54,798 nucleotides of DNA, taken from Macrostomum lignano. Its lineage: Eukaryota. Where the stretch lies: positions 1 through 54,798 of the forward strand of contig NIVC01004213.1 of assembly GCA_002269645.1 (NCBI GenBank), written 5' to 3'. Position 1 is the stretch's first letter. Every line of letters begins with the position of its first letter. This document shows, in pieces, positions 3,440 to 26,650 of the stretch. The notes below the pieces were generated by a model. It was given only the letters and a program-made list of their open reading frames with translations, searched no databases and had not been told where the DNA came from. The position numbers and the translations under genes were made by a program.

Positions 3440-6400
3440 ACTAACCTCATCATTATCCACTCTTTCACCATCTTTTCACTCATGGCTTGCTAAGCCTTTC
3501 TCCCGGGGTGGCAAAGCATAAGGAAGTTTGGGTAAGCTAATGGCCTCTCCCCGTGCAAAGCCCGCCTGTGAGTGCGTGCTGCGGGGCCGTGTGTGCGTGC
3601 AGTAGAGGGATTAGCGAGTCTTGGCACAGAATGGCAGCAGGGAGGTTGCAACCCCATGCTGACGCGTCCCTTCGCCCTGAGCAATCTAAACCATAGACAG
3701 TACATGTTCGCCTCATACTACTCTTAGTAATCAAAGTCGCAAGTTAGCCTCGCTCACAGCCACAAAGGATCCCCTGCTGAGAAATCCTCCAGATTGAGCC
3801 CAGAGTTCCCGATCATGCCCCAAGCAGAGTCCCTGTACTCGGCTGCATGTGTCTCCCCTGTTAGCCTAAATCTCCTGGTAACCATCCCAGGCGGGGCTCT
3901 AGCCTCGAGAGGTCTGGTAGTGAGATCCAGGTGTGCCAGGTCACATAGAGTGGTGGCAGCCACTCGGTCATACTATGACTTACTTGACTTAGCTGCAGGG
4001 CTGTCCCGAAGGGGACACAGCGGGAAGGCGCGGGCGCCCATTCCGCTAGTCCCTGAACGGCCGACGCGTCGCTATGGACGGAGGGTTGGCGCCGCCCAGG
4101 GAGGTCCCCCAGTGTCGCCAGCAGCTATGGTGCTCTCTGGAAAGGAGAGTTCAGCCCTGCGGGTGGCCCGAAGGTAGCGCATGAGCTGATTAAAGTTTTC
4201 GGGTTTGCACGCTTCAGTAATAGATGTGTGTGGCCCGAGGTAAGTGAGTCTGGCCCGCGTGAAGGCGGGACAGATGCTGACGAAATGCTCAGCGGTTTCG
4301 TCACCTGAGTTGCAGAAGCTACAGGTGGCGTTGGTGGCGTTGCCCTGCAGTTACTGGTGCCTGGAGAAGCAGCCGTGACCAGAGAGGGTCATGGTGGCAG
4401 CCCGGATGTCTCTGCGCGAGAGGCGCAAGAGGAGCTTCCGGAGCTGGTGAGAGGGCTGAGGGACAGCGCCTCTGGATTGCCTGCAGTTCGTGCGGTTCGC
4501 CCAAGTCGAGCGGTGCTGAGTCCTGATCCACGCTTTGATGCGCGAGTCGATGACACAGCCAGGAATCGGGACAAGAGGTTCGGGGCCGAGAGAGGAGCCG
4601 GAGGCACCAACTTTTGCAAGGGTGTCAGCCAACTCATTTCCTCGGATCCCCACATGCCCCGGAACCCACTTAAGGGTAATTTTGTTGGCGGAACCCAACA
4701 TGTTGAGGAGTTTGATACAGTCGAGGACTGTAGCAGAGTTGGTGCTGCAGCCACTGATGGCGTGCAAGGCAGCTTGGCTGTCCGAATGGAAAATGATGTT
4801 CTTACCAGTAACGCCAGTGGCGAGAAGCTCTGCAGTGCAGGAGCTGATGGCCAGAACTTCATTTTGGAAAACACTGGAGTTGACCCCAGTGTATTGAGCG
4901 TGGGTAGCGATGACCCTCCCGTTCAGAAAGATTCCAACACCAAAGCCGGTGTTGGCTGACTGCTTAGAACCGTCGGTGTAGCAATGAAGCTCACCAGGGT
5001 TCCATTGGTCATTGATGTTATCGCGCGAGTCGATAGCTACGGAGTAGCGCTGTCTCAGGTTGAGCGTTGAGGCAATGCCATCGGTGAAGACGCGATTGGC
5101 CTGACACTCGTTGAGAAAGTTGAGGCACAGATCGCTATGCGGGACAAGGTTCCGCTTAGCAGGTGCTCTCATGTAAATGAATTTGACGCCGGCATCAATT
5201 AGACGCCGCGTCGTTCTAGCCGCCTCACCCCTGATGAAGAGGTCAAGAGGCGGAAGATTAAGGAAGGCCCCCATGCCAGCAAAGGGCGTGGACCTGGTGG
5301 CGTTGCAGATGAGCCTACACGCTCTGCCTTGGATCGTGTTGAGCAGGTCTGCATGGCTTTTGACCTGGGTAGCGCTAACCCAGACAACAGAGGCGTACGT
5401 AATGGCAGGTCTAACTACGGAAGTATAGATCCACCAAAGCCGCTTTGGGGATAGACCCCAAGAAGTGCCAAGTGCTCGTCGGAGCTGGGCCAGGATGGCT
5501 GAGGCACGCTTGGCTTTTGCTTTCACGTGGGAGGACCAGTTGAGCCGGTGGTCAAGTATGACCCGAGACATCTGGTCTGGTGCGCGAAGGCAATATCTCT
5601 GCCGTAGAGCTGCAGAGGACGTATGTTCCAGCGTAGTCTGCTGGTAAACATAATGGCAACGGTTTTGGGCTCAGAGAGTTCCAGACCATTGTCATTGGCC
5701 CAGGATTCTGCTTTGCGGATAAAGCTCTGCATCAGATCCCTGAGCGTGCTGGGAGACGGTCCTGCCACAATGGCCGTGACGTCATCAGCATACCCGACTT
5801 TGAAGACGGGGTCGGGTCGGGAGTCACTCAAAAGAGCGTCCATGACCAGGTTCCAGAGCGTCGGGGTGAGGACTCCGCCTTGGGGTCCACCCTTACAGAC
5901 TCTGGTGGAGGCAGTTTGCCCAAGAAGTTGGGCAGTGACCGTACGGTTGGAGATCATGTACATGATCCACCGTATGAGGGTAGCATGAGCTTTGCGATTT
6001 TGAAGGGCCCTCTGAAACGCTTCAAAGATAACGTTGTCGAAGGCGCCAACAATGTCAAGAAAGAGAGCCAGAGCGTAACCGTCACCCAGTACCGCCCTTT
6101 CAATCTTCTCGACAATCGCATGCAAGGCGCTGTCAGTCGACCTCCCGGTACGGAAGGCGTGCTGATTATTGCTGAGGGGCATCGCTGTCAGCTCGCAGGA
6201 CAGCAGCCGCCAGAGAATAAGCCTCTCAGTGAGCTTAAGCATTGCTGACGTTAAGCTAATAGGCCGGAAGGTTTGGGAATAAAGACTACCCGAGCTTCAG
6301 TCCAGCATTTGGGAACGTATCCCAGCTGGATAGAGGCCCGCATAAGATTGCGGGTGAGTCTCAGGAACGAGGGTATCTTGGCTGCTTCACGAAGGAGAAC

Positions 6401-6600
6401 AGGGTAGATACCATCAGGTCCAGGAGATTTGAAGGGTTTGAAGGTTCTGACCGCACGAGCGATTAGGTCTTCAGTGACAATGCCCGCCGCTAGGGTGGCT
6501 CCATCCATCGAATGGTTGGGCTCCGGTCTAGCAGTAGGTACCCTCGGGAAGAATGTGCTAAGCATATGCTGAAGCACTTCTTCAGGGTCTTTAGGGTCAT
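3440..6600 (-). mobile_element. 5'-truncated non-LTR retrotransposon with RNase H (LOA/Lian-like)
   Basis: RT, RNase H and CCHC motifs at 4072-6590, with a probable 3' UTR down to about 3440. Boundaries approximate; no TSD found. Confidence 0.85.
4072..6590 (-). pseudogene. Disrupted RT-RNase H-zinc knuckle ORF of the LINE
   Basis: Motifs SPGPDGI, FIPKP, FRPISLTS, FLDIVGAFD, GGPQGGVL, YADD, YTDGSK, SDSQAAL, WVPGHVGIRGNELAD and CSFCNSGDETAEHFVSIC. Lesions: deletion/frameshift near 6270, 1-nt loss at 5562-5564, premature TAA at 4351-4353. The frame then runs to TAG at 4072. Confidence 0.92.
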
Positions 6601-7485
6601 ACTATGACCGAGTGACCAACTATTGCACCTTGGCTACAGGTGGGGTCCATGTGGGTCCTTGGCCCTCTGGTCACAAAGCGCTACCAAAGCTATCAATCAT
6701 GTGGGCGGGACAGTCTGGTGCTGGAGGTCCGTCAGGCCATTGCCCGGTCATAGGCAGCCTACGGTCATTGCCCCCTCTAGTCATGCGTTCGTCTCCCTAC
6801 GGAGCGGACAGGCGACAAGGGCGGTTACATCACTATTAATTTATTAAAATTTCCACTGACTGTTACATGTCGTTTGAGTTTCTTATTAAGAGAAACACAG
6901 AGATTACTTAGGGAGAAGCTGGTGAATGAGCTCGCAGATTTTATTGGTTTTGACTATGCGCATTGAAATACAAATAAAGTACCATTTGCAGACACAGAGC
7001 TATTGAGCTACGTTAGGAAAAGAGCTCAATTACTTGTACATACTTGCTAGCTTGAAATTTGAGTTCAACTGAAAAGAGCAATAGGTTGAGCTACAATATA
7101 TCAAATTTGATAAAAATACGAGTACTCGTAATGCCACTGCTTGGAAAGAATTCCTAAGCTACAGGTAAGAAACTGAAAAATTAGCTGGCTTACAAAATGC
7201 ATCATGCTTAAAACACGTGCCTACAGTATGAAAATGAATCCTACAGTAATCACACTGAGCTAAATTCCATTGAAAATGTTTGCTAGAAAATCAAAGAGCC
7301 GAGACGCTGTCAGTTCGCTATGGGTCACCTGCCGGATTCTGTGCAGCACCGGACCGCTCCATCGAACCTCGGAGCAGCTGTGTCAGTCGTCTGAAATTTG
7401 TCACGAAGGGTAACTAGATGTTCAGTTAGTCGAGGAATAGGTGTAGAAGTCAAGGGAATGCGGAGTGCATATCTGCACACAGGTT

Positions 7486-7745
7486 GGGGAACTGTAGACA
7501 GCTGGGGAATTGTAGACAGCTGGGAAATCGTTGACAGCTGAGGAATTGAAGAAATCTGGGGAATTTTAGACAGCTGGGGAATTGTAGACAGCTGGGGGAA
7601 TTGTAGACAGCTGGGGGAATTGTAGACAGCTGAGGGAATTGTAGACAGCTGAGGAATCGTAGACAGCTGGGGAATTGTAGAAATCTGGGGAATTTTAGAC
7701 AGCTGGGGGAATTATAGAAATCTGGGAATTCTGTAGAAAATTGTA
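7486..7745. repeat. 18-19 bp satellite (GGGGAATTGTAGACAGCT)n
   Basis: Direct tandem copies visible. Confidence 0.9.
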
Positions 7746-8039: not shown

Positions 8040-8345
8040 CTGATTCCGGAGGAGTATTCGTGATTTCCAGTTTAAAATACACAATTTCCGAGGAGCCACC
8101 GCATGACTGCTTGTCATTTCGCGGACATCGATATGAACAAGTTTTGTTGAGTTCTCTTTTATACATCGCCGGAGGTAGTTCCGATTCGCAAAAGCAGCGG
8201 TCACCGTTAGCGATGGCGAAATATTTGAATCTGCCGTAGAGATCACGCTTCACACACTCGGTAGCGCAAATGAGGTGTGACATCTCATTCGATGTGAGGC
8301 TTACTATTCCCGTACCATAATATTGGTAGCATTGAATTGGAAAAT
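8040..8345 (-). CDS. WSC exon 7 (306 nt)
   Basis: TTTCAG acceptor; FPIQCY...MSHLICATECV...RCFC...CSYRC...SCGG; GCAAGT donor at 8039. Confidence 0.85.
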
Positions 8346-11300
8346 CTGAAACAGTTAAAATCAAAAGCATGGCAGGTAAAAACAAGTGCACAAGCAAGTG
8401 TTTGTGGTTGATAAAAACATGCAGAAATATTAAACTGCAGAACGTGAATCAGAATAGACTCAAATAGTAAACTCACTAGGAATAGCTGGATAGACCTTCG
8501 CTCCCTGCTTCTTTTCATCTGAAGAGGTGACGTTGTGGGTGAACTCAATAGAGAACATTTTACAACAGCTCGATCAGATTTTCAGGTCAAATGGAAATGA
8601 AACCAGGGAGAAAAGCTGGATGCTCTTAGCAGTTCTGACTAAGACTAAACATCCTCATTGCATAGTAACTGTAGACAGCTGGGGCAATTTTATACTGCTG
8701 GGTGAATATCAGATAGCTGGGCGAATATCTTAAGAGAGCTGGGTGAGTCGATGGCTGAGGGCATTGTAGATGCTTGGGAGAATTTTAGGCAGGTAAATGA
8801 CAGTGTTGGGCACAATTCCGATACTCCGATACTATGATACTTTCGGCGATACCTTTTGGGTATCGGAGTATCGGAAGTCGATACTTTTTTGACGGTATCG
8901 GACTTCGGTAACTTCCGATACAATTTTTTAATTTTCCCGATAGTCCGATAGTCCGATACTTTTAAAATTTTGAGTATGCAAACAATAAAATTTTTGTTAA
9001 AATGAATGAAATTGTTGCGTAATTTTACAGAAAGTAATGATAAATACTTCACTTTTTAGGTCAATGAAGCTGAAATAATTTATACTTTCGATCCTAAAGC
9101 AAGTTATTAGAACTTTTAACATAGCCTGCGCTCATACATACTTTTTTAATTAGCTTATAGTAATTAGTAATTATCATTAAAATGATATTATTTAGTCAAT
9201 TATCATGCTGCAAGTTTGCCGATCGATTCTACAATTTCTACAATAGCAAATACACTAGTGCTACGCTAGTAACTCAAGCAATCTAGTGAACGATGCGTAC
9301 ATATACAAACATACGTGCATGCGTACATGCATACAGCAATAAATAAATAAATCCACTATTTTGGAAGCATTTATTGGAAGGACAAGTTGAGTAAAGGGAA
9401 GAGAAGTGACGCGATTTACTTAGGTTTACATGTATAGAGAGCGGAGGGGCGATGTGTTGTCCAATCAGAGGTAAGGCTTTATAGTCTCTACCTCGGCTTA
9501 AAGCATTCGGTCTGGCTGAGTACATGTGTACATGTAAGTGCGCTCAACCCAAAAAACAAGGCTGAGGTTAAGCCTACTTCAAGGCTAAGCTTGCTTCATG
9601 TGCCTGAACAATCTAGGAGAAGGTCTGAGAGGCTTAAATTATCATCATCATCATCATCACAATCATTATCACATCATCATTCACATTCACAATCACATCA
9701 CAATCACAATATACTTATACTAAATCTCTAAGGTCTGTCTGACCGGTATTCCAGTCTACAGCCTGAATTCTTGAACCGATTTTTTCAAACTTTCTTTATT
9801 CAATTGCCAATGGGAAGTTGGTTAAATATTCGAAAAACGAGTTTTTTTAATGCTTTCAATGGAAAGCTAGAAAAGGTCAAAATCTCACTAACTGAATTTC
9901 AATTCCAATTAAGATTGCGCCACAACTTTTCTCTGTTCACTGTGTACGCCTCAATACTGGCTGCAATAAGGGCCGGAGAGGAAAATAATGCTCAGTGGCT
10001 TGCGTGTTTACATTCTGACCCTGGCTGACTGGCGGACTGCATTGACAATTGCTATTTATAGATTTCACTCAACTGTGTATTGGCTCTGCCTGCATACAAC
10101 ATGTGCACACTGAGCAGCCTATCAGTGCTATGTATTTGACTGCAGTGCCAAAGCATATATGGCTGATTTTTGCGCCCTCCGATCAGTAGGCGGAGTAGCC
10201 GCAGTGTAGGCACTAGGACTAGGTATAGGCTAGGCGTAAGGTCCAAGGTTCGAGTCTGCCTCTTCGGCAAATGATTAAAATTAAATTAATTTATTCATTT
10301 AAAGCTTGTGCCTCAACTAATTGGAATATTTTTGTTTAATTCCCAAGGCACACTTAATGAATAATTTTTGCCATACAAAATTATTTAAGTTCACTAAGAG
10401 AAAAGTTGATTTGTAAAAAACTGCTTCGAGTATTACTCATCGCATTAATGGGTATTGCCTAGCTCCATGAAAGTATGAAAATGCTAAGCTGCTAAATTTA
10501 TTGTTAAAATGAAGGCTGAATTGTGAAATTGTGTATCGAAAATTGATTAGTGAACCGTAATAAATGCTGAGAAAAAATTAGATTCTTGAAAGAATCCTTT
10601 ATTTCAGCTGAGGATACTGAGGAGCCGGCTGAGAGGAGAACTGCAGACTGCTGAGGGGAACTGCAGATTGGCGAAAAGATCATTCATGCAGACTGCAAAG
10701 GGGATAAACTGCTGAAGTAATTCCTCTAGCCTTATAAGCGTATAGCTGAAAACTGCTGAGAGGGACTACAGTTTAAGTGATTAAGTGCAGGTTGTTTAGG
10801 GGATTACTGTGGACTGCTGAGTGAATTATTGTGGTTTGCTGAGGGGACAGTTCTAGGCTGCAGAGGGGATAAATGCTTAATGTGGTAAAAGTTATAAATT
10901 CTGCAAATGGGATAACTCCAGGCTGCTAAGATAATGACTGCAGTCTGTTTTGTGGGATTAGAAGGGATAATTTCAGGTTGTTGTGGGGGATATCTCAGGA
11001 ATTGCTGAGATGTCATGGCTTTTTGGGGCAATTTGGGGCAGGATATGATCTTTGCTCCAGACTTATGAACGTATGGCTGCAAACTGCTGAAGTGGTAACT
11101 GTGGACTACTGTGGACTGCGAAGTAAATTTTTGTTTGCTGTGGGGTCAATTCTATGCCGCTAGAGTATGACTGCAGTCTGTTTTTTGGGATTTGAAGGGA
11201 TAATTTCAGGTTGTTGTGGAGACATCTCAGGAATTGCTGAGATGTCATGGCTTATTGAGAGAATTGCTGAGATGTCAAGGCTTATTGGGAGAATTGCTGA

Positions 11301-14300
11301 GATGTGATAGCTTTTTGAGGTAATTTCTGAGATTTCAAGGCTCACGGGAAATTGCTCAGATGTCAAGGCTTACTGAGGGAATTCTTGAGATGTCAAGGCT
11401 TACTGAGGGAATTACTGACATTTTAAGGCTTACTGGGGGAATTGCTGAGATGTCAAGGCTTACTGGCCTGGGAGAATTGCGTAAATGTCAAGGTTCGAGT
11501 TTAATTGCTGCGATGTCGATGCTTACTGAGGGAATTGCTGAGATATCAAGGCTCATGGGGATGGCTGAATTGTTGGGGGAGGGGGTTAGGTTGTTGAGCG
11601 ATTGTAAGATGGTCAAGTACTTGTAGCTCATTTAATTCAGATAATAATGAAATAGTACACACAAGTGATGCTGAATTCTGCTGATAGGAAATACCAGCGT
11701 ATTTATTAAGGTTTGATTCTTTGAGTTAGGCTAATAAAGAGGGGGTTCAACTAGCCTGCGGACCAGAATTGGCCAGGCCAATGACGATATGCACTAAGAG
11801 TTCGTGCTTGAAAGGATAAGCACTATTTACTGATTGAAGGGTGTTGGGCTGATAAAGGAAACTTTTTTGCTGGGGAAAGTTTTGATTCATGGCAATTTAT
11901 TTTTGTTAAAAATAAGAAAAATTAAATTTCTGATTAATGGAAATGGAAAGTAATGGTTACTCTTGGGCCAAAATGGCAAAGCGGGGGGCTGAATGGCTAG
12001 TATGCATCTATATTCGGTAAGCATTGTTTTTGCAAACACTGGGTATCGGAATAGAGTATCGGAATTAGGGTATCGCCGATGCTCAAATTTGGGTATCAGA
12101 CTTTCAGGTATCGGCGATATTTTTTTCAGAAAGGGTATCAGAGTATCGGTTTTCACAGATACTTTTTTTGAGTATCGTGCCCAACACTGGTAAATCATGA
12201 GCATGCGGTGAATTGGGGCTGATCGATTAAGAATTGGCAAACGCATTCGAGTCAGCACCAGCTCATGCACAGGCGGTGAGGTGACCGAACACTTGTCTGA
12301 TTCCGGAGGAGTATTCGTGATTTCCAGTTTAAAATACACAATTCCCCAGGGACTACCGCATGACTGCTTGTCATTTTGCTGACATCGATATGAACAAGTT
12401 TTGTTGAGTTGTGCCTTATCGGTCGCCGGAGGTAGTTCCGATTTACAAAAGCAACGGTCACCGTTAGCGATGGCGAAATATTTGAATCTGCCGTAGAGAT
12501 CACGCTTCACACACTCGGTAGCGCAAATGAGGTGTGACATCTCATTCGATGTGAGGCTTACTATTCCCGTACCATCATATTTGTAGCATTGAATTGGAGA
12601 ATCTAAAACAGTTGAAATCAAAAGCATGGCAGGTAAAAACAAGTGCACAAGCAAGTGTTTGTGGTTGATAAAAACATTCAGAAATATTAAACTGCACAAG
12701 ATGAATCAGAATAGACTGAAATAGTAAACTCACTAGGAATAGCTGGATAGACCTTCGCTCCCTGCTTCTTTTTATCTGAAGAGGTGACATTGTGGATGAA
12801 CTCAATAGAGAACACTTTAAATCAGCTCGAACAGATTTTCAAGTCAGGTGGAAATGAAACCAGGGAAAAAAGCTGGATGCTCTTAGCAGTTCTGACTAAG
12901 ACCAAACATCCTCATTGCATAGATAACTGTAGACAGCTGGGGCAGTTTTATACTGCTGGGTGAATATCAGATAGCTGGGCGAATATCTTAGGAGAGCTGG
13001 GTGAATCGATGGCTGAGGGCATTGTAGATGCTTGGGAGAATTGTAGGCAGGTAAATCATGAGCATGCGGTGAATTGGGGCTGATCGATTGAGAATTGGCA
13101 AACGGCTTTTAACAGAAAGAATCAAATTGGTTTGCATTCGAGTCAGCACTAGCTCATGCACAGGCCGTGAGGTGACCGAACACTTGCCTGATTCCGGAGG
13201 AGTATTCGTGATTTCCAGTTTAAAATACACAATTCCCCAGGGACTACCGCATGACTGCTTGTCATTTTGCTGACATCGATATGAACAAGTTTTGTTGAGT
13301 TGTGCCTTATCGGTCGCCGGAGGTAGTTCCGATTTACAAAAGCAGCGGTCACCGTTAGCGATGGCGAAATATTTGAATCTGGCATAGACATTCTTCACAC
13401 ACTCGGTTGCGCAAATGAGATGTGACATCTTTTTAGATGTCAGTTGAAGATTCATTACATTAGAAATTTTGAAATTGTAGCATGCAAATGGCAAGTCTAA
13501 AACAGTTGAAATCAAATGCATTGCAGGTGAGAACAAGTGTACAAGCAAGCGGTTGTGTTACAAAAAAGCAGAAATATTAAACTGCACAAGATGAATCAGA
13601 ATGAACTCAAATAGTTAACTCACCTGGAATAGCTGGATAGACCTTCGCTCCCTGCTCGTATTTATCTGAAAAGACAAAGTTGTGGGTGAACTCAGAAGAG
13701 AACATTTTACATCAGCTCAAATATATTTTAAGGTCAGGTGGAAATGAAATTAGGGAGAAAAGCTGGAAGCTCTTGGCAGTTCTGACAAAGACCAAAACGT
13801 CTCCATAGTAACTGTAGCAGTCGGTATAATTTTATACTGTTGAGTGAACGTCAAATAGCTGGGCGAATATCGTATAAGAGCGGGGTGAATGGAAGATGGC
13901 TGAGGCACACTTGCTGTTTCCGGAGGAGTATTTGATGTGGTCAGATTTGAATACACGATTCCTATTGGGCTACCGCATGATTGCTTGTCATTTTGTTGAC
14001 ATCGATACCAGCAAACATGTTCGCCATCATATTTATAAATCGCTGGAGGTAGTTCCGATCTACAGTAGCACCGGCTACCGTTAGTGATGGCGAAATATTT
14101 GTACATGTCGTTGACAGTACGCCTCACACACTCGGTAGCGCAAATAAGGTGTGACATCTTATTAGATTTTAGTACTGGATGATCATTCCGGTAATCGTTC
14201 TTATTAAAGAAGTAGCATGCAACTGAAGAATCTAAAACAGTTAAAATTAAACACACAGCAGGTGAGAACAAGTGCACAAGCCAGCGTTTTTGGTTTATAG

Positions 14301-17300
14301 TAACTCACCCACTTAAACTCAAACTCACCCGAAATAGCTGGATAGACCTTCGCTCCCTGCTTCTTTTTATCTAAAATGCAAAATCGTTATTCAATTGTTA
14401 TAGAAAGCAGGGCAATTAAAAGACAAGTGGGGAATTGCAGACAGCAGGGGAATTGTAGATAGCTGGGGAATTGTAGACAGCTGAGGAATCGTAGACAGCA
14501 GCGCAATTAAAGACAGCCGGGGAATTGTAGACAGCTGGGGAATTGTAGACAGCTGAGGAATCGTAGACAGCAGCGCAATTAAAGACAGCAGGGCAATTAA
14601 AGACAGCCTTGGAATTGTAGACAGCTGGGGAAATTTAGACAGCAAGGCATTGTAGACGCAGGAGATGATACGTATCTCGCTAAAACTACCGGATCACTTA
14701 TGACACAAAGGCAAGATAAGTGATTTCATAATGACAGATCACAGACCAGGGTGAAGTTGCTCTACTGAAGTAAGAAATTTGTAATTCAACTCAAAATCTG
14801 ACTGGTGTCTCACCTGGATCTTCCGAAGTGCTTTTGCCTTTCGAAGTCTCCTGGCTAGTCGGAGCTGCATTAGTCCCAGCTGAAAAGTGGCAGTTATATC
14901 TTGACTGCAGCTTAGTTAGCACAAGTTAAAGTGCAAAGTCTTTTGGAGTGAATGTTTGTACACAATTTGGGAAACGGTAGAAAGTTGGAGGGATTGTAGA
15001 GAGTTGGGGAATTGTAAACAGCTGTTGAATTTTAAACAGGTGGGGAATTGTAGACAGGTGGGGAATTGTAGACAGGTGGGGAATTGTACACAGCTGGGGA
15101 ATTGTAGACAGCAGGGCAATTAAAGACAGCTGGGGAATTGTAGACAGTTGCGGAATTGTAGACAGCTGGGGGAATTGTAGACAGCTGGGGAGTTGTAGAA
15201 AGCAGGGTAAGTAAAGACAGCTGGGGAATTGTAGACAGCTGAGGAATGGTAGACAGCAGCGCAAATAAAGACAGCCGGGGAATTGTAGACAGTTGGGGAA
15301 TTGTAGACAGCTGGGGAACTGTAGACAGCTGGGCAATTAAAGACAGCTGGGGAATTGTAGACAGTTGGGAAATTGTACACAGCAGGGCAATTAAAGACAG
15401 CTGGGGAATTGTAGACAGTTGGGGAATTGAAGACAGGTGGGGAATTGTACACAGCTGGGGAATTGTAGACAGCAAGGCAATTAAAGACAGTTGGGGAATT
15501 GTAGACAGCTGGGAAATTGTAGAGAGCAGGGCAATTAAAGACAGGTGGAGAATTGTAGACAGTTGGGAAATTGAAGACAGCTGGGGAGTTGTAGACAGCT
15601 GAGGAATTGTAGACAGCAGCGCAATTAAAGACAGCTGGGGAATTGTAGACAGCTGAGGAATTGTAGACAGCAGCGCAATTAAAGACAGCCGGGGAATTGT
15701 AGACAGTTGGGGAATTGTAGACAGCTGAGGAATCGTAGACAGCAGCGCAATTAAAGACAGCCGGGGAATTGTAGACAGTTGGGGAATTGTAGACAGCTGA
15801 GGAATCGTAGACAGCAGCGCAAATAAAGACAGCCGGGGAATTGTAGACAGTTGGGGAATTGTAGACAGCTGGGGAACTGTAGACAGCTGGGCAATTAAAG
15901 ACAGGTGGGGAATTGTACACAGCTGGGGAATTGTAGACAGCAGGGCAATTAAAGACAGTTGGGGAATTGTAGACAGCTGGGGAATTGTAGACAGCTGGGA
16001 AATTGTAGAGAGCAGGGCAATTAAAGACAGGTGGAGAATTGTAGACAGTTGGGGAATTGAAGACAGCAGGGCAATTAAAGACAGCTGGGGAATTGTAGAC
16101 AGCTGGGAAATTGAAGACAGCAGGGCAATTAAAGACAGGTGGGGAATTGTAGACAGCAGGGCAATAAAAGACAGCCGGGGAATTGTAGACAGTTGGGGAA
16201 TTGAAGACAGCAGGGCAATTAAAGACAGCTGGGGAATTGTAGACAGTTGGGGAATTGAAGACAGCAGGGCAATTAAAGACAGGTGGGGAATTGTAGACAG
16301 CAGGGCAATAAAAGACAGCCGGGGAATTGTAGACAGTTGGGAAATTGAAGACAACAGGGTAATCAAAAACAGCTGGGAAATTTTAGACAGCAGGGTAATT
16401 AAAGACAGGTGGTGAATTGTAGACAGCTGTAAGGATTGTAGACAACTGGGGAAATTGTAGACAGCTGGGAAATTGTAGACAGGTGGGGAATTGTAGACTG
16501 CTGGGCAGTTAAAGACAGCTGAAAAATTGTAGACAGCAGAGCAATTATAGACAGCTGAGGAATTGTAGACAGCAGGGCAATTAATGACAGCTGGGGAATT
16601 GTAGACAGCTGGGGAATTGTAGACAGCTGGGGGAATTGTAGACAGTTGGGGAATCGTAGACAGCAGGGCAATTAAAGACAGGTGGGGAATTATAGACAGC
16701 AGGGCAAATAAAGACAGCCGGGGAATTGTAGACAGTTGGGGAATTGTAGACAGCTGGAGAATTGTAGACAGCTGAGGAAGTGCAAACAACTGGGAAATTG
16801 TAAACAGCTGGGGAATTGTAAACAGCTGGGGAATTTTAAACAGCTGGGGAAGTGAAAACGTTTTTGGGAATGGTAGATATCTGGGGAATTGTAGACAGTT
16901 GGGAAATTTTAGCTAGCTATGGAATTGTAGACAGCTGGGGAATTGTAGACAGTTGGGGAATTGTAGACAGTTGGGGAATTGTAGACAGCTGGGGAATTGT
17001 AGACAGCTGAGGAAGTGCAAACAACTGGGAAATTGTAAACAGCTGGGGAATTGTAAACAGCTGGGGAATTTTAAACAGCTGGGGAAGTGAAAACGTTTTT
17101 GGGAATGGTAGATATCTGGGGAATTGTAGACAGTTGGGAAATTTTAGCTAGCTATGGAATTGTAGACAGCTGGGGAATTGTAGACAGTTGGGGAATTGTA
17201 GACAGTTGGGGAATTGTAGACAGCTGGAGAATTGTAGACAGCTGAGGAAGTGCAAACAACTGGGAAATTGTAAACAGCTGGGGAATTGTAAACAGCTGGG

Positions 17301-20300
17301 GAATTTTAAACAGCTGGGGAAGTGAAAACGTTTTTGGGAATGGTAGATATCTGGGGAATTGTAGACAGTTGGGAAATTTTAGCTAGCTATGGAATTGTAG
17401 ACAGCTGGGGAATTGTAGACAGCTGGGGAATTGTAGACAGTTGGGGAATTGTAGACAGCTGGGGAAGTGAAAACAGTTGGGGAATTTTAGACAGCTAGGG
17501 AAGTGTAAACAGCTGGGGAATTGTAAACTGTTTGGGAATTGTAGACAGCTGGGGGAATTAGCTCGTTTATTTTCTACATGGATACTGGCAAACGGAGTAA
17601 ATTATTTAGTACAAGTATTAGACTTAGTACTGTGCTGCAGCAAAATGCTTATCAAAAGGCAGCGCTATCACCGAATACTTGCATGGCTTTCGTCGAGTGA
17701 ATTCGAAATACGCGTGCCACTTGTAGCCTACGCAAAGTTTGCCTTGACAAGACTGTTTGCAGTCAGTGTCATTTATTTTATGCTGCTCTGCAGGTATTCC
17801 CGATGAACAGTAGCACTTTCTAGCATTCTCAATGGCGATGTATTTATATTTGTCGTAGAGATCGTCATCGATACACGCTTGAGCGCAAGCCTTGTAGGAC
17901 ATAGGTTTACTAGGGTACATATAAGTGACATCTACATGTGATTCATCATAAAAGCATCCTGTCAATCGAAAGTTGTCTAAAACGGTTAAAACAAATCAAT
18001 TTAAATAAGAGCAGGTCAAACAGCCGAATTATCTCAGACGGAAACTCACCTGGAGTGACCGTCGCTCCCTGCTCGTATTTGTCTGAATAATGGAATTATT
18101 TTGGGTTGTATTCAACAGGCAATCAGTTCTTGAGCAATTAATAATAGATGCAGCTCAAGAGGCAGTGACTAAAGAGTCACCACAGAGAAGGTAAGAGACG
18201 GCAAAAGAGTTGAGATAAATAAAATAGAGCTGAAGTGACGGCAAGATTATGGAAATTATATTCATATTTCCATTAGAATCAAAACTGGCACTTGCAAGGA
18301 AGTAGGATGACAAAGTACTTGCCTGGCTTGGGAGAAGAGAGTGTTGTGCGCAGGTTGAAATACGATATTGCACCATTGTAACCACACGATTGCCTGTGAT
18401 TTCCAGGGCATCGACTTGAGCATTTCTCAATTTTAGTAGCCATATCTCGATCAGGTAATTCCGATGCACAATAGCATTTGTTACCGCTGTCAATGCCGAA
18501 GTATTTGAACTTTTCGTAGAAATTACGCCTCACACACTCGGTTGCGCAAACAAGGTGTGACATCCCTCTTCCTTTTGCCAGTACAATTGGTACATGAGCC
18601 GGTATATTGTTTTTTAATTGGCATCGGATCGGGCGAGACTCTGAAACAAGTGACCACAAGTAGATAAGCTGCTATCGATGGTTTCGTAATGACATACGAA
18701 ACAGTGGGAGGAAAAACGTTAAGACCGCCCCAAGACCGACAACCACCCGAAGACCGACGAAAAACACAACTCACGTGACTACAAAAGACTGACTGAGATG
18801 CACGAGGGACAGAGCGAGAGAGACGGTCGCTTAATGGATAATTCACGGGCGATTGAGTCAGATTTGTTAGGGATGTCCAGCGGCTGTTTGGATGTGGGAA
18901 GAATGTAGATCGTCCTCAAACCGCCATTATCTCATACACCGAGACCATATGAGAGACAACCAACGCAGGCAGATACAACCACTTGCAGTGAAACGGATGA
19001 CACGACTGAAAGAACTTAACTGGAAACTCACCTGGAATAACTGGATAGACCTTCGCTCCCTGCTCGAATTTATCTAAAAAGGTAAAGTTTTGGTAGAACT
19101 CAGTTAAGAACAGATTACATTATTTTGAGCTGATTTTGAGCAATGTAGAAAATACTTAATAGTTAAAAATCATATATCATCGAAAATTAAAAGAAATAGC
19201 ACAAGTGAAGTAGGCTTCTTTTGGGCTTATTTGGCCACTGGATTTTACATTCGGAACTGTATTTTTATACATGTGCTAACCTTTGCCATTAGTAACCTTT
19301 GCTCTGTGTTAATCTAATTGGTAAAAATTTGACCGTTTGTTTACCTTTCTTTGTAGAAGACAGTACTGCGCTCAGGTTGAAATACGCTACTGCCATATCC
19401 CCACCGCAGGATTGCCGGTGATTTCCTGGGCAACGATGCGAGCAATGTACTTCAGGGTCAAGTTCTGTTGGCAACATCCGAGATTCAAGTTCCGATTCAC
19501 ACAGGCAGGTGTCACCATAGGCGAGCCCGAAGGATTGGGATTTCTTTGGACTTTTCCCAGCACACTCGAGAGCGCAAATGCGCGGCGACATTTTCTTCAG
19601 CTCAGCTCTAGGACCGATTCCGTAAACTCGATAGCATCCACCTGAATCAGTTGGAAACAGATAGCAAAGTCGTCAGTTGCAGTGTGGATGAGAAGCATTT
19701 ATACTGCTAATACGAATTTGAACTGTTCTGAAATGCTGTTCTGACATGCTGAGAGAACCGTTCTGGCATGCTGAGAGAACCGTTCTGGCATGCTGAGAGA
19801 ACCGTTCTGGCATGCTGAGAGAACCGTTCTGGCATGCTGAGAGAACCGTTCTGACATGCTGAGAGAACCGTTCTGGCATGCTGATTGGTACTGTTCTGAC
19901 ATGCTGAGAGAACCGTTCTGGCATGCTGATTGGTGCTGTTCTGACATGCTGAGAGAACCGTTCTGGCATGCTGGTTGGTACTGTTCTGACATGCTGAGGG
20001 ACTTCTTCTGACATGCTGAATAGAATGGAGTGCTAATCTGAGCCAGTTATTTTTGTCTTTACTTTTAGCATCCTTTTTAGCATACCTTTAGCATCTTTTA
20101 GCATTTTAGCATTTAGTCGTTTTCTCGTCTCGTTTTCGTTTTCGCCCCCTCTGAAAGGTATGTCCCAGCAAAGTACGAGCTCACATCAAAATATGCTTTT
20201 TCGGAGTTTTAGTTTTTGTGTAGCTTAACTTAGCTGACATGCCCTTCGCTGCTAGAATTGCAGGCATTTCTTTTTCATGGTCAGTGAGGCCACTCCAGAG

Positions 20301-21138
20301 CAAATTTTCTCCCAGAGGAAATTGGAGGAAATGGAGGAAACCTAGAGGCTTGGAGGAAATTCTGGAAGGACAAAACTTCCTCCAAATATTTTTACAAGAT
20401 TTAAATTCAGGTGAACTTAAACATAATGTACAGAGGGACACCGATTGAATTTTTATGCAAAGCCTTGCATGCTGTTCCCACTGTATAGTCCTACATAGTC
20501 CACTATTTTACTTTCAGAGGTGGACGAAAAGGAACACAAGACGAAAACGACTTTGTCTATGGCAACCCTGAAGTTTTTGAGGGTTGCCGGAGCTGCAGTA
20601 GTTCCACCTGTTATACCCTGAATGCAGCTGAGCATGAGCACTAGCTAAAGTGCAAATATTTCTGGAGTGAATATGTGCACACATACAGTATTCGGGAATT
20701 GTAGACAGCTGGGGGAATTGTAGACAGCTGGGGAATTGTAGACATGTTAATATGCTGAGGGAACTGTTCTGACATGCTGAGGGTACTTTTTGACATGATG
20801 ACAGATGAGAAAAATGTATTTATTAAAGTGGAATCAATCATGACAGGAAGGCAGGAAGTCATTCGATAGTGACAGTTCACAGACCAGGGTGAAGTTGATT
20901 TTCTGAAGGCGAATCGCTCTGGTCTTTCGGCGAATCCTCCTTGGTTTCCGGAGCTGCATCAGGCTCAGCTGAAAAGTGGCAGGATTATCCTGAATGCAGC
21001 TGAGCATAGGCACAAGCAAGCTAAAGCACAAATCAAAGGAAGGAAATGCTACTCACATTTTTTCTTTGAGGACGGGCAGCTCAAAGCACCGTAGATGGCT
21101 GCGCTAATGCAGAAAAGAAGCAGAACCGTTCGGAACAT
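8040..21138 (-). CDS. Multi-exon, signal-peptide-bearing protein with seven WSC-like domains; 3' end not resolved
   Basis: Signal-peptide exon followed by phase 1-1 exons whose lengths are multiples of 3, except WSC4 (1 nt short). Each large exon has the 8-Cys WSC spacing (C, CxxxC, CxC, CxxxC, C). About 910 codons if all exons are joined. Confidence 0.8.
8477..8518 (-). CDS. 42-nt linker exon (DEKKQGAKVYPAIP)
   Basis: CTTCAG acceptor, GTGAGT donor, phase 1-1; paralogous to five other linker exons. Confidence 0.75.
9641..9712. repeat. (CAT)n/(CACAAT)-type microsatellite
   Basis: Direct reading. Confidence 0.75.
11190..11565. repeat. Degenerate ~30-bp tandem repeat (TTACTGAGGGAATTGCTGAGATGTCAAGGC)
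   Basis: About 12 copies. Partly overlaps a larger duplication, 10915-11050 versus 11150-11290. Confidence 0.8.
12297..12602 (-). CDS. WSC exon 6 (306 nt), chimeric, donor mutated to AC
   Basis: 5' half nearly identical to WSC7 and 3' half nearly identical to WSC5; donor ACAAGT instead of GCAAGT. Confidence 0.75.
12734..12775 (-). CDS. 42-nt linker exon (DKKKQGAKVYPAIP)
   Basis: TTCAG acceptor, GTGAGT donor. Confidence 0.75.
13188..13496 (-). CDS. WSC exon 5 (309 nt)
   Basis: TTTTAG acceptor, 8 Cys, GCAAGT donor. Confidence 0.85.
13624..13665 (-). CDS. 42-nt linker exon (DKYEQGAKVYPAIP)
   Basis: TTTTCAG acceptor, GTGAGT donor. Confidence 0.78.
13914..14231 (-). CDS. WSC exon 4 (318 nt), donor one G short
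   Basis: 8 Cys; ends ACAGCAAGT where paralogues have TCAGGCAAGT. Confidence 0.75.
14329..14370 (-). CDS. 42-nt linker exon (DKKKQGAKVYPAIS)
   Basis: TTTTAG acceptor, GTGAGT donor. Confidence 0.75.
14405..14650. repeat. 18-bp satellite block
   Basis: GGGGAATTGTAGACAGCT and GCAGGGCAATTAAAGACA units. Confidence 0.9.
14747..14764 (-). CDS. 18-nt microexon (VEQLHP)
   Basis: CTTCAG acceptor, GTCTGT donor; matches the last 6 codons of the 84-nt exon at 20885. Confidence 0.55.
14814..14879 (-). CDS. 66-nt Ser/Thr/Pro-rich exon (AGTNAAPTSQETSKGKSTSEDP)
   Basis: CTTTTCAG acceptor, GTGAGA donor, phase 1-1; paralogous to 20885-20968. Confidence 0.65.
14975..17560. repeat. Large 18-bp satellite array with a 235-bp higher-order repeat
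   Basis: Roughly 140 units of two variants; higher-order repeat starts at 16771, 17006 and 17241. Confidence 0.95.
17683..17976 (-). CDS. WSC exon 3 (294 nt)
   Basis: LTGCFY...CAQAC...KCYC...CKQSC...C; GCAAGT donor. Confidence 0.82.
18050..18082 (-). CDS. 33-nt linker exon (DKYEQGATVTP)
   Basis: In-frame 9-nt deletion relative to the 42-nt linkers; TTCAG acceptor, GTGAGT donor. Confidence 0.75.
18323..18640 (-). CDS. WSC exon 2 (318 nt)
   Basis: TTTCAG acceptor, 8 Cys, GCAAGT donor. Confidence 0.85.
19032..19073 (-). CDS. 42-nt linker exon (DKFEQGAKVYPVIP)
   Basis: TTTTTAG acceptor, GTGAGT donor. Confidence 0.78.
19345..19641 (-). CDS. WSC exon 1 (297 nt)
   Basis: GGCY...CALEC...CLC...CSHRC...SCGG; canonical GTAAAC donor. 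Confidence 0.85.
19735..20015. repeat. 22-bp tandem repeat (GCTGAGAGAACCGTTCTGGCAT)n
   Basis: About 12 copies, with a GCTGATTGGTACTGTTCTGACAT variant. Confidence 0.92.
20512..20607 (-). CDS. Possible 96-nt phase 1-1 exon (GGTTAAPATL...)
   Basis: AACAG acceptor, GTAAAA donor, open frame; 5' part homologous to the 66- and 84-nt exons (GCAGCTCCG core). Confidence 0.4.
20690..20795. repeat. Short 18-bp satellite block grading into 22-bp-type units
   Basis: GGGAATTGTAGACAGCT three times, then GCTGAGGGAACTGTTCTGACAT. Confidence 0.75.
20885..20968 (-). CDS. 84-nt acidic linker exon (EPDAAPETKEDSPKDQSDSPSENQLHP)
   Basis: CTTTTCAG acceptor, GTCTGT donor, phase 1-1. Confidence 0.65.
21057..21138 (-). 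CDS. First coding exon with signal peptide (MFRTVLLLFCISAAIYGALSCPSSKKK)
   Basis: ATG at 21138, n/h/c-region pattern, phase-1 GTGAGT donor compatible with all downstream exons. Confidence 0.72.
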
Positions 21139-21601
21139 GCTCAGGTCGAAGCGAGTTAGATCAGCTGATCCGCGCAAATTGTTGTTGAACTTTTAAAAGG
21201 AAGGTGTCTTGTTTCTCTTAGTTGCTGTCTTGTGAAAAGTGCAAATTCAGCTTATCGATAGCAGAAATTCTGAGAGCATTTGGGCTCGGGATCAGCACTA
21301 TAAAATGGTCCGAGTCGCTCGGTTCAGCCACAGACGCAACTGTGCATTTTAGTCAGCGGGCTCTGGCCATAGACAGTTTGCATTTGCGGGAATTCAGTTG
21401 TGTAATAAAGAAAGGCTAAGAGTGCACAAATTCTTTTTAGAAGGGTCATGGAAATTGATTTTGTGACTTCTGTACTGAAAAGTACATGTTACTACGGATT
21501 GAAAACACGAAATTTGGTTTGTGGTAAAAGTTTCATTAAGTGTTTGGGCCGAAGCAAAGTAAGTACGATTTTATAATTAGCTTATTGAGCTAAGAGGTTA
21601 T

Positions 21602-21960
21602 ACACTCAGCAACATTGAAAAGTTTCCACCCTTGCACCAAGGGTCCATGGGCAACGCGATCGATGGTTTTACCGCTTGGTTTTTGGCCATAGACTAATGA
21701 GAAAAATGGGCATGAAGGGAATTAAAGTTCGATATCTGGTGTCACAAGGAGAAGCACCTGTGTGTACGGGAGACGACAACAATTTGGTCCGCCGAATGAC
21801 TGATCTAGACCGAGCAAGTGCGGTTGGCATGCTCAACGCGCGGGATCGTCCATTCGTTCAGTTGCTCGCCGATTTGAACGATCGCATACCACGATACGCA
21901 AGCTGCATATGAAGTTGAGAGAAACCGGAAGTGTGGAACACGCGACGCGAGGCATCCAGC
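21602..21960 (+). pseudogene. Tc1/mariner-like transposase N-terminal (HTH) remnant
   Basis: MTDLDRASAVGMLNA, then a frameshift, then RSVARRFERSHTTIRKLHMKLRETGSVEHATRG; TA-CACTCAGC TIR-like start. Other end not found. Confidence 0.55.
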
Positions 21961-22288
21961 TCATCTACATGTACATGCGAAGCACGACTGAAAAGGCAGA
22001 TCGGCGATTGCTGCGATCTTGGTGAAATACCAACACTGCTGGTCACCTTACTTCGTCTGATATGGGGTGAAAGAAACCGCGAAGGTTGCACGCTTGTGGT
22101 TGCTATGCCCGGTACTGACTGTGCTTTGAACATGTATGAGTACACAGCGTGGACATGGGCATGGACTACTTGTTTTGCTGTTCATTCTTTATTGTCAAAT
22201 AGATCAAGCCTACTGGCAACGCTTCTGATTGTCACCATGGATGAATAATATAACTGGATCGCCAGAAGCTCGATTTTTTTGGTCCTAG

Positions 22289-23351
22289 CCATAGACAAGC
22301 ACCAGCATCACAAGAAGCTCAGAATGCCGTACTTTCACCCTGCATATATTGCGAGCATGTGCTCGGACATAAAATAGAATACTTATAAATAAAGGTTTGC
22401 AGCTTCTGCAGCGGCTATTCGTCTGTGTGAAAGTACAACATTTCGTACTGGTCGTACTGCTTCCCGTACAATCGAGCTTGTTTGGGATTGAAACGCTTGG
22501 CTCGTGTCGGCTCGGCGCTTTGGTTTTTTGTCGGCAGCATTGGCAACTCGTAATACGGCTTACCATCACTGTCGGTCTTTTCAATAAGACTGTCTCTACG
22601 GCGCAGCTGCTTCATACGCTCTTGTCCTCTTTCACCCAATACATACATGTACATCAGCGTGAAGAGTACCTCATCCTGTAATCGTTCACCATTGGATCGA
22701 TCAAAGTACACAAATATTTTCTTGAGGTCAGTTTCCTCAATCGGTTCGAAGCGCTTCACACTTCCACCTGCAGCATGATATTCTCGAACTTTCATTTGCA
22801 GCATACGGTTAGCGCTGCCGAATTCAGGTGCATCAGTGATGTTGATTTGTCGCTTAATGGTGTAGTTAAAAAAGCGCTGGATGCCAGCCCTTATGCAAAC
22901 CAGACTTGATGCGGAGTACTTTTCGCCACTCGGCTTCGCCGAGAACGCTGAAGAAAGCGTTGTAGCTCTATCTTCACTATGATCTTATCGACTCAGTTCG
23001 GTAACCAGAGCCAATTCGCTTGATGTAACGCCATCGAGGGACTCTACTTGTAAATGCTTCCAGTTGATCATCTTTCTCCAGTGTCAAATAAGCTAGCAAT
23101 GTGTTTGTATTCGCAAAGGCTTCGAACTGCGCTTCTGTCCTCCTTCTGCCCAACAAAAGACTCGCTTTTTGTTGCAGCTACTTCTATGGTTCAAACCAGA
23201 CCCTTCTGTCCTCTCTCTGCCCAACAAAAGGCTCGCTTTTTGTTGCAGCTACTTATGTCTATGGTTCAAACCAGACCCTTCTGTCCTCTCTCTGCCCAAC
23301 AAAAGGCTCGCTTTTTGTTGCAGTTACTTATGTCAATGGTTCAAACCAGAC
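22289..23351 (-). mobile_element. Crypton-like (DUF3504-type tyrosine recombinase) deleted element
   Basis: KPSGEKYSASSLVCIRAGIQRFF...LQDEVLF...RGQE...DSDGKPYY...TKN. CCTAG direct repeats at 22284-22288 and 23352-23356. Catalytic C-terminus not seen. Confidence 0.65.
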
Positions 23352-23353
23352 CC
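23132..23353. repeat. 75-bp tandem triplication at the element end
   Basis: CCCTTCTGTCC at 23201 and 23276, CCCTAG at 23351; each unit has a CAACAAAA..TTTTGTTG hairpin. Confidence 0.9.
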
Positions 23354-24491
23354 TAGGCGTCTAGTTTTAGAAATGCATTGCCACATATGTAGCAATGCAT
23401 GATTGTCACACGCTTCGTGAGTGGCTTGATCAATAGGACAATTGTAGAGATCTCCAAATAAGATACAAAGTAGACTACTATAAGTAGCAACATGAAGATG
23501 CGAAAAACTCGAATGTTACAAAAACTGCAAATTGTCATACTCTATTTTTAAAGACCACGAAAACAACAAGTGACCATCTTTTGCAACATTTAAAATTAGA
23601 ACTCCGAATATGGTATCGGCGCTCAAAGCTAATGTATTCCATAGGGGTCAAATTTCCAAAGCGCGAAACTGTCACCTACTAAAAATAAGCTGTTTCTCAA
23701 CAATTTTTCCTATAAATACAAGCCAAAATCTGAGCTAAATATCTCAGACTCGGAGCAGCCTCTAAAGATCTTGGAGTTTGCTGGAACAGCTAAGCGAGGC
23801 TACATCTCTGAGAGAGAGATAAACCAATTGGTGAGCCGTTGCTCGAGCCTTTGTTATTGATTTTGAGAGCGATTTATTGCCGGCCGCTACTATCCAGTCG
23901 TTTGGACTGAGTTCATTGAATTTGAGGCCTCCCATTTTCCTAAGGGATTGGATAGGATCGGCGGACCGATTCCGATACCCTTAGAGGATTATCGATTGAT
24001 TGATTTTGGTTATCCTAGATTAACCGATAGGAGCACACGACTCCGATTCCGTTAGATCTAGAAGAAGACGCCCCTCTTGGAGGTCCTCGTGATTATTACA
24101 GAAAGTTGATTTTATTACAAGGGCGCATCGTTGATATTGATTACTGAGCTTAAGGCCTATATTGATTTGCATTCGAGAAATACTGCGACGTCGCCTGATT
24201 TGATCGTCACGCTCTCATTCGGCCGATTCGAGACTTCAAGAAGATTCCTCCGGAGAAGAAGAAGATTAGAAGAAACGAGCTCGGAGAACCTGCACTACAC
24301 AGAAGAGGAGCCCGCAAAAGTAAGTGATCACTTTATTTTGTTCCCAGGCTTAAGTGTCTGGAAGTGGGAGTTTTCGGGAGACTGATCACCTCCCGAATCA
24401 ACTCTTCACAATTAATAATATTATCTATATGATTCATTCCGTAGACAACTAACCATTGCTTTTTCGATAGGATGAGAAACTAGTACTAAAA

Positions 24492-24607
24492 ATCTGGGAG
24501 GCTGACCCAGCAACTGAGGATCTGGGAGGCTGACCCAGCAACTGAGGATCTGGGAGGCTGGCCCAGCAACTGAGGATCTGGGAGGCTGGCCCAGCAACTG
24601 AGGATCT
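24492..24607. repeat. 28-bp tandem repeat x4 (ATCTGGGAGGCTGRCCCAGCAACTGAGG)
   Basis: Direct reading. Confidence 0.92.
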
Positions 24608-26468: not shown

Positions 26469-26650
26469 CTCCCAGAGGAAGACAATATTAATAGTAGATT
26501 GCTGTAAGTCGTTGTAACTAATAGTTAAATATCTGCGCCTTACTTATTCGATTTTTTAACATTCTTCCATAGTTTTTTACTATATTTTAAACAAAAAACT
26601 TGCTTTGCTCGTATCGTTTAGTTCGCAAAATGCATTATACTATCAGATAA

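Follow-up and report, generated by a model that had tools for sequence, protein, structure and literature searches.

The window analysed here, the whole stretch of 54,798 nucleotides (nt) of contig NIVC01004213.1 from the flatworm Macrostomum lignano (GenBank assembly GCA_002269645.1), carries on its minus strand, between positions 21138 and 7383, a signal-peptide exon, seven exons that each encode a WSC domain, six linker exons, two short Ser/Thr/Pro-rich exons and a terminal micro-exon. These parts probably form one gene of 17 exons, which encodes a secreted protein of 877 amino acids (aa) with seven WSC domains. In silico splicing of the window copy gives a coding sequence (CDS) of 2634 nt, in which all 877 codons are open and neither an internal stop nor a frameshift occurs. 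An earlier note on this DNA had described a single signal-peptide exon feeding seven WSC-like exons between 21138 and 8040. This description was confirmed. Both limits are exact exon boundaries, the first being the ATG and the second the last base of WSC exon 7. The about ten short exons mentioned there were resolved into eight internal short exons, the terminal micro-exon and one decayed exon copy (20605-20564). The terminal exon, missing from that description, was located by homology at 7390-7383, so that the CDS extends beyond 8040.

All 15 internal exons are of phase 1-1, as had been proposed, and their lengths are divisible by three; since a few ancestral exon types gave rise to all of them, the 15 phases do not count as so many separate pieces of evidence. 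The symmetry of every exon means that the loss, gain or skipping of a cassette (a linker exon with its WSC exon) leaves the reading frame intact. One linker exon stands before each of WSC2 to WSC7. The second linker has 33 nt against 42 nt in the paralogous linker at the same position, which agrees with the loss of 9 nt claimed earlier. The 84-nt and 66-nt exons, and the decayed copy of the latter, were located by a homology search with exons of a related protein. The 66-nt exon would be expected in the mRNA, the homologous exon being used in P0001 (BOX15_Mlig015297g1), a paralogue with eight WSC domains. Exon 1 shows 96% identity (26 of 27 residues) to exon 1 of P0001 and is identical in the GenBank stub P0154 and in the UniProt fragment A0A1I8J9M0 (P0155), which comes from an older assembly. 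At the other end of the gene, an identity of 95% was found between the block 7250-7480 and the 3' end of the P0001 gene, where the terminal exon reads ACAACTGA (D, N and a stop). No second signal-peptide or start exon is present in the whole window, and no additional WSC exons were found elsewhere in it. Splicing in phase 2, at the GT two bases downstream of the GC donors, was rejected, because the reading frame then meets a stop codon within the following WSC exon. The features are collected in Table 1.

Table 1. Exons of the multi-WSC gene and repeats lying in its introns (window positions)
Feature	Position	Strand	Remarks
Exon 1, start codon at 21138, signal peptide MFRTVLLLFCISAAIYGALSCPSSKKK	21057..21138	(-)	82 nt, ends in phase 1, donor GTGAGT
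Acidic Ser/Pro-rich exon SEPDAAPETKEDSPKDQSDSPSENQLHP	20885..20968	(-)	84 nt, phase 1-1; in P0155 spliced between exon 1 and WSC1
Decayed copy of the 66-nt 'AGTN' exon	20564..20605	(-)	acceptor tract deleted, length not divisible by 3; probably no exon
WSC exon 1	19345..19641	(-)	297 nt, 8 Cys, donor AAG/GTAAAC; upstream junction as in P0155
Linker L1 DKFEQGAKVYPVIP	19032..19073	(-)	42 nt; 100% identity to P0001 linker La
WSC exon 2	18323..18640	(-)	318 nt, GC donor CAG/GCAAGT
Linker L2, shortened, DKYEQGATVTP	18050..18082	(-)	33 nt; paralogous linker Lb 42 nt
WSC exon 3	17683..17976	(-)	294 nt, weakened GC donor CAT/GCAAGT (T at -1); paralogue CAG/GCAAGT
18-nt satellite GTAGACAGCTGGGGAATT	14977..17559		intronic, non-coding; ~143 copies
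Ser/Thr/Pro-rich 'AGTN' exon GTNAAPTSQETSKGKSTSEDP	14814..14879	(-)	66 nt, strong splice sites, flanked by two satellite blocks
Linker L3	14329..14370	(-)	42 nt
WSC exon 4	13911..14231	(-)	321 nt, replacement donor CAA/GTGTGC, weak, phase 1 kept
Linker L4	13624..13665	(-)	42 nt
WSC exon 5	13188..13496	(-)	309 nt, GC donor
Linker L5	12734..12775	(-)	42 nt
WSC exon 6	12297..12602	(-)	306 nt, ORF (open reading frame) intact, donor mutated to CAG/ACAAGT
hAT-like non-autonomous transposon, intron after WSC6	8801..12189		3.4 kb; perfect 13-bp terminal inverted repeats (TIRs) CAGTGTTGGGCAC
Linker L6	8477..8518	(-)	42 nt
WSC exon 7	8040..8345	(-)	306 nt, GC donor
Terminal coding micro-exon ACGACTGA	7383..7390	(-)	adds D, D and stop; acceptor aaatttcag; homology to paralogue
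Probable 3' untranslated region (UTR)	6940..7382	(-)	to AATAAA at ~6945, extent inferred; first ~130 nt almost identical to paralogue

The predicted protein and its family in M. lignano

The WSC-like minus-strand ORFs (19591-7960) match the Pfam profile PF01822 in seven cases of seven, with scores of 35.4-45.6 bits (E values of 1e-8 to 1e-11) against a gathering cut-off of 27.8 bits. Each domain contains eight cysteines, and 56 of 56 are kept; seven cysteine columns of the alignment are invariant, and the eighth is misaligned only in WSC3. When a profile of the seven domains was compared with the PDB, the WSC domain of Kremen1 was the best match over the whole domain (E = 6e-8). In the exon ORFs, as in the proteins of the family, WSC is the sole Pfam domain, and Kringle or CUB, PKD, REJ or transmembrane, or sulfotransferase domains are lacking.

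The mature protein would have a mass of ~96 kDa and an isoelectric point of ~8.7. From the N-terminus, the predicted product has a signal peptide and a short acidic spacer, then a first set of three WSC domains, separated by a Ser/Thr/Pro spacer from a second set of four, and finally a tail of two residues; the linker before each of WSC2-WSC7 has 14 residues (once 11) with the motif QGAxV. The sole hydrophobic 19-residue window falls on residues 1-23, the signal peptide. No transmembrane segment or C-terminus of the glycosylphosphatidylinositol (GPI) type is present in the model protein, which ends with ...TNTPPESDD and a stop. Because the signal peptide is the only hydrophobic segment, the product is taken to be a soluble secreted protein; UniProt likewise gives the automatic name 'Secreted protein' to the 5' fragment. 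The earlier suggestion of a secreted or surface lectin-like protein is thus retained in its secreted, lectin-like half, and a surface receptor is unlikely in a protein lacking a transmembrane segment and a GPI signal. The membrane anchoring of isoform-diversifying receptors of the Dscam type, which have alternative exon arrays, is likewise absent. The predicted role of the protein is that of a lectin-like gland product that is secreted in soluble form and binds glycans multivalently.

Homologues of the gene were found in P0001, P0003, P0004, P0005 and P0006, and the paralogue gene ids are Mlig015297, Mlig000913, Mlig000975, Mlig010030, Mlig008847 and Mlig031420. The number of WSC domains is eight in P0001, six in P0003, five in P0004 and three in P0006 and its relatives, as compared with seven in the window gene. 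Members of the family have the same signal-peptide exon, linkers with QGAKVYP and a separate phase 1-1 exon for every WSC domain. The exon junctions of P0001 match the model ('...PPES/DKKKQGAKVYPAIP/NSP...'), as do those of P0155; together with the seven independent Pfam matches, this speaks against a chance arrangement. The D-N-stop tail is present in P0001 and P0003, with the exon mapped for P0001 only, and P0166 ends with ...PEPDD. Close relatives in protein searches were exclusively M. lignano proteins, and the family has so far been seen only in the M. lignano lineage in the databases searched. With three to eight domains, this narrow distribution and a ratio of nonsynonymous to synonymous divergence (dN/dS) of ~0.5-1.3, it would be a suitable subject for studies of secreted proteins that evolve fast. 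The earlier statement that the architecture does not correspond to a named gene was correct, yet two fragments of the locus, A0A1I8J878 and A0A1I8J9M0, are already in UniProt under the automatic name 'WSC domain-containing protein'.

GC donors are a further common property. In the window gene they follow WSC2, 3, 5 and 7 (18322, 17682, 13187 and 8039), so that at least a quarter of its introns (4 to 5 of 16) are of the GC-AG type. P0001 has GC donors after its WSC domains 2, 3, 5, 6, 7 and 8, and they occur in P0003 and P0004 as well; mapping of these three proteins onto their loci gave the forms G/GCAAGT, G/GCAAGA and G/GCGAGT. The GC-AG introns are kept across paralogues of 38-56% identity (L001, L002, L004). 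Because they are common to the window gene, P0001, P0003 and P0004, the GC-AG introns after the WSC exons are considered ancestral in the family.

The P0001 locus resembles the window locus in its 84-nt and 66-nt spacer exons, linkers, GC donors, terminal micro-exon and 3' UTR, and the flanks are 87-92% identical. Both P0001 and P0003 show the layout of three WSC domains, a spacer and a further set of WSC domains within one annotated protein, across similar satellite-bearing introns. The differences are also clear. The window gene has seven WSC domains where the paralogues have eight, six, five or three, and its cassette order is different; the identity of WSC1-3 to the domains in corresponding positions is only 30-64%. 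The 66-nt exon lies between WSC3 and WSC4 in the window, whereas in P0001 it forms an N-terminal array of ~11 copies. Unlike the paralogues, the window locus has splice-site lesions and a GenBank annotation of only 57 aa.

Cassette turnover by unequal crossing-over

Cassettes 4-7 were aligned, each beginning with its own linker exon and reaching as far as the following one. The first part of cassette 6, up to the middle of its WSC exon, shows 98-100% identity to cassette 7, and the remainder shows the same 98-100% identity to cassette 5. A single breakpoint at 12491-12445 explains 109 of the 121 informative sites, and none of 20,000 permutations was as good. Unequal crossing-over has made cassette 6 a hybrid of cassettes 7 and 5, joined at a breakpoint within the WSC exon. 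The order observed (cassette 5, the 7/5 hybrid, cassette 7) is the one that results from a single such event in which cassettes 7 and 5 were misaligned.

The same process is seen in P0004, where five near-identical cassettes follow one another with a period of 716 bp. The family alters its domain number via unequal crossing-over between cassettes. The claim that the domain set can vary by duplication and recombination was therefore borne out, by the mosaic cassette 6 and by the paralogues with 3, 5, 6, 7 or 8 WSC domains. Duplication and recombination act here on an evolutionary time scale. The locus offers a clean and readable case of domain gain by unequal crossing-over within a symmetric exon, and neither parent cassette has been lost.

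Splice lesions, second copy and alternative readings

GenBank gives for the locus only a 57-aa product, BOX15_Mlig010459 (g1/g2), which consists of exon 1, the 84-nt exon and the residues GL followed by a stop, read from the intron. No GenBank gene calls cover the WSC exons within 10877-31138 of the window. In UniProt, P0155 joins exon 1, the 84-nt exon and WSC1 as modelled here and is 100% identical to the window, and A0A1I8J878 (P0165), also from an older assembly, strings WSC4-WSC7 together by reading through the GC donors into introns. The odd UniProt models can be explained by gene prediction that accepted only GT donors, and the faulty automatic models across the family are probably due to the GC donors. 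The GC-AG introns together with the repeats are probably the reason why the seven-WSC gene was missed in GenBank. The model puts an 877-aa gene in the place of a 57-aa product, and the same annotation fault is likely family-wide.

Several findings weigh against the reading of one gene encoding a functional seven-WSC protein. The donor of WSC6 has changed from G to A at +1 (ACAAGT) and is unusable. The original GC donor of WSC4 was removed by a deletion of ~150 nt, where a weak GT three bases on retains phase 1, and the GC donor of WSC3 is weakened by T at -1. The hAT-like transposon has been inserted in the intron 3' of WSC6. The GenBank model terminates after the 84-nt exon, retaining intron sequence, and the junctions modelled here are matched in full by P0155 only as far as WSC1, the later joins being predicted. 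Carbohydrate binding would be ascribed to the protein solely through its membership of the WSC family. The AlphaFold2 model of one domain, built on a seven-sequence alignment, was poor (pLDDT, the predicted local distance difference test, of 55) and gave no structural confirmation. Judging from the splice sites, WSC6 is probably left out of the mRNA or spliced wrongly, and inefficient inclusion is probable for some cassettes (WSC6, perhaps WSC3 and WSC4). The dN/dS ratio between cassettes is 0.34-1.33, being 0.74-1.3 in the closest pairs, and the cysteines of the window copy are unchanged. The window copy is probably under weak or relaxed constraint, and its mRNA may not carry all seven domains. 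The symmetric exons let the gene tolerate lesions at the level of cassettes.

A second copy of the locus, L005, is present on contig NIVC01000467.1, with flanks 99.5-99.8% identical to the window (compared with 11231-31138). It ends inside the transposon, carrying the same hAT-like insertion at its WSC6-side end, and the two-copy comparison covers the gene up to that point, cassette 7 and the terminal exon lying outside it. L005 may be either an allele or a duplicated segment. Its GenBank product likewise has 57 aa, with the intron retained after the second exon. Three lesions were found in L005, namely AG to GG in the WSC1 acceptor, a conserved cysteine replaced by phenylalanine in WSC3 and a frameshifting 13-nt insertion with a stop in WSC6, the GC donor of which is intact. 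Cassette 6, the youngest one, is damaged in both copies by different lesions. Because of the 13-nt frameshift in WSC6 of L005, preservation of the frame is not a rule, and the argument of the earlier note that the shortened linker points to selection on frame is weak. The two copies differ more in exons (14/1972) than in introns (4/1944; Fisher p = 0.03), and the 14 exonic differences comprise seven nonsynonymous and seven synonymous ones. This exon excess may be due to conversion from other cassettes, to selection or to chance.

The locus might instead be a decaying, largely non-functional paralogue, perhaps transcribed from a live promoter but with mis-spliced or truncated transcripts, and with its ORFs left intact by the young age of the duplication. 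This is a real possibility, though not a probable one. The dead WSC6 donor, the lost WSC4 donor and the T at -1 of WSC3 would be expected in such a copy, as would the three lesions of L005, the intron-retaining 57-aa models of both copies, dN/dS near 1 in recent cassette pairs, the 7:7 differences and the transposon within the gene with a long interspersed nuclear element (LINE) just downstream. Against decay, the window copy has no stop or frameshift over 877 codons and keeps its 56 cysteines, and a functional-looking paralogue has well-conserved counterparts of its promoter, exon 1, terminal exon and 3' UTR. P0155 shows correct splicing of exon 1, the 84-nt exon and WSC1 for the same sequence, the loss of a single cassette would not put the protein out of action, owing to the symmetry of the exons, and high dN/dS is also expected in fast-evolving secreted reproductive or recognition proteins. 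A division into two or more genes, e.g., a three-WSC and a four-WSC one separated by the satellite-filled 2.8-kb intron, is very improbable. The satellite-rich gap 17682-14880 does part WSC3, with its weakened donor, from the remaining exons, but the window contains no second signal-peptide or start exon, the exons are collinear in a single phase, and the corresponding layout falls within a single annotated protein in both P0001 and P0003. The earlier assumption of a single gene accordingly stands, the terminal exon being shared and the annotated paralogues being laid out in the same way.

Regulated diversification, the alternative-splicing idea of the earlier note, in which weak GC donors and symmetric exons would allow combinatorial exon skipping and many lectin isoforms per locus, appears quite unlikely. 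The uniform phase of the internal exons and the conservation of the GC-AG introns in paralogues are in its favour. In other animals, GC donors are overrepresented in introns that undergo alternative splicing. The 66-nt exon has ~11 genomic copies in the paralogue L001 as against 3+1 in the protein model, and in the UniProt model P0009 two linkers adjoin each other and are followed by an exon of the WSC7 type. However, identical repeats assembled from short reads would give the same copy-number contrast, the automatic models P0009 and P0165 read through GC donors into introns, and the domain differences between the copies are genetic lesions rather than regulated choices. A broader form of the idea treats the Mlig010459/015297 family as a rapidly diversifying, polymorphic repertoire of multivalent lectins, fed by cassette exchange (unequal crossing-over and conversion), haplotype-specific gain or loss of splice sites and GC-donor-dependent skipping. 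The excess of exon over intron divergence between the near-identical copies fits it, and, if it were true, each worm would secrete different domain combinations, serving sexual conflict (seminal fluid) or microbial recognition. We consider this improbable, and the 'diversifying glycan-recognition system' of the earlier note is likewise speculative and improbable. A reproductive (prostate or seminal-fluid) role is a reasonable guess for one candidate function, made by analogy with other M. lignano WSC proteins. The immune, mucus or adhesion role suggested in the earlier note is an equally tentative candidate. The stronger proposal that the gene encodes a prostate-gland seminal-fluid protein, transferred at mating and evolving fast under sexual selection, seems unlikely. 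The window protein is secreted, lineage-restricted, fast-evolving and variable in copy number, as such a protein would be. In the literature, ~20 prostate-limited M. lignano candidate transcripts have a WSC-type best match (PMC5977470 Table S1), RNA815_80.4 (= Mlig-pro5), with two WSC domains, was prostate-specific by in situ hybridisation (PMC4490696), and Mlig-pro46 resembles WSCD2 (PMC6953679), all of which count for this proposal. On the other side, the window does not contain the Mlig-pro46 primers, RNA815_80.4 differs in its domain sequence and its signal peptide is unrelated, and nothing else resembles the family more closely than oyster and fungal WSC proteins do, with which identity does not exceed 33%. 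Among the 18 seminal-fluid candidates with mapped gene ids (Mlig_3_7 ids; ~58 others were left out), none is Mlig010459, 015297, 000913, 000975, 010030, 008847 or 031420, which also counts against the reading preferred here. The family gene ids were not found in the literature searched, and 'WSC domain' with 'flatworm' gave no papers.

Apart from the array listed in Table 1, smaller blocks of the satellite GTAGACAGCTGGGGAATT lie at 14429-14662, 7485-7730 and 20694-20744. Reading of the satellite as a mucin-like coding exon (a 585-aa ORF on the gene strand) was rejected, as each frame has 6-22 stops, the register drifts and the arrays of P0001 are intronic. The array is ~1 kb shorter in L005, and in L001 (10585-32700) ~1.8 kb of satellite-matching sequence separates successive copies of the 66-nt exon (~11). 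The hAT-like element is bordered by an 8-bp target duplication with one mismatch (TGATTTAC/TCATTTAC) and contains a 30-nt tandem repeat at 11230-11553. A 788-aa ORF at 43327-45693 (+) with a hAT C-terminal dimerisation domain is probably a hAT transposase; the 13-bp TIR motif is not found nearby. Remains of a non-LTR (long terminal repeat) retrotransposon with reverse transcriptase and RNase H ORFs are located just downstream of the gene at 4351-6577 (-), and a second reverse transcriptase ORF of 761 aa, also a non-LTR remnant, lies further upstream at 36060-38345 (-). The intron before WSC1 contains a 22/45-nt tandem repeat (19738-20019), and the corresponding repeat is translated in the paralogue UniProt model A0A1I8G2L4 (P0008; 'ACQNSSIQHVR…'), which looks like an annotation artefact. 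At 26651-31024 (-) there is an uninterrupted 1457-aa ORF with no Pfam match, for which GenBank has a product of 1737 aa; this gene is also present in L005. Unrelated tandem repeats occur at 32429-33275 (20-nt unit, 41 copies), 46043-46622 (21/42-nt), 51650-52284 (CT-rich simple repeat) and 23132-23354 (75-nt unit, three copies).

Relation to known WSC proteins and module genes

Outside M. lignano, an all-against-all hidden Markov model search gave as nearest relatives the tandem multi-WSC proteins known from oysters, from fungi and from a diplonemid, with identity of at most 33%. The oyster protein K1QKY9 (P0012, 'putative fungistatic metabolite'), Saccostrea XP_062621142 (P0014) and fungal proteins of Tilletia and Mytilinidion share with the predicted window protein a signal peptide, tandem eight-cysteine WSC domains and the lack of any other domain. 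Unlike them, the M. lignano family has the QGAKVYP linker and its own N- and C-terminal exons, and the likeness rests on protein comparison. Some fungal multi-WSC lectins have been reported to bind beta-glucan. To our knowledge, nothing is known of beta-glucan binding or comparable activity in the flatworm multi-WSC family. Tandem-WSC secreted proteins are a widespread known kind, of which the M. lignano proteins, as far as their sequences allow, are a distinct branch. Kremen1 (PDB 5FWW/5FWS) has the WSC domain that is the best solved-structure match; it is a Wnt co-receptor that spans the membrane and also has Kringle and CUB domains, whereas the window protein is without these.

The prostate-limited WSC candidates of M. 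lignano are likewise secreted WSC proteins of the same species with many gene copies, described as rapidly evolving (PMC4490696, PMC5977470, PMC6953679). They belong to other gene families and have other ids, and the transcript described encodes two domains in ~1 kb. The gene studied here adds a distinct multi-domain branch to the WSC expansion among the M. lignano secretory and seminal-fluid candidates.

The locus opens neither a new mechanism nor a new class of system. Classical genes of animal extracellular modules carry one domain per symmetric phase 1-1 exon and expand by tandem exon duplication through unequal crossing-over. The window gene differs from these genes in that at least a quarter of its introns have GC donors and in that the crossover product is directly legible in the sequence, still flanked by its two parental cassettes.

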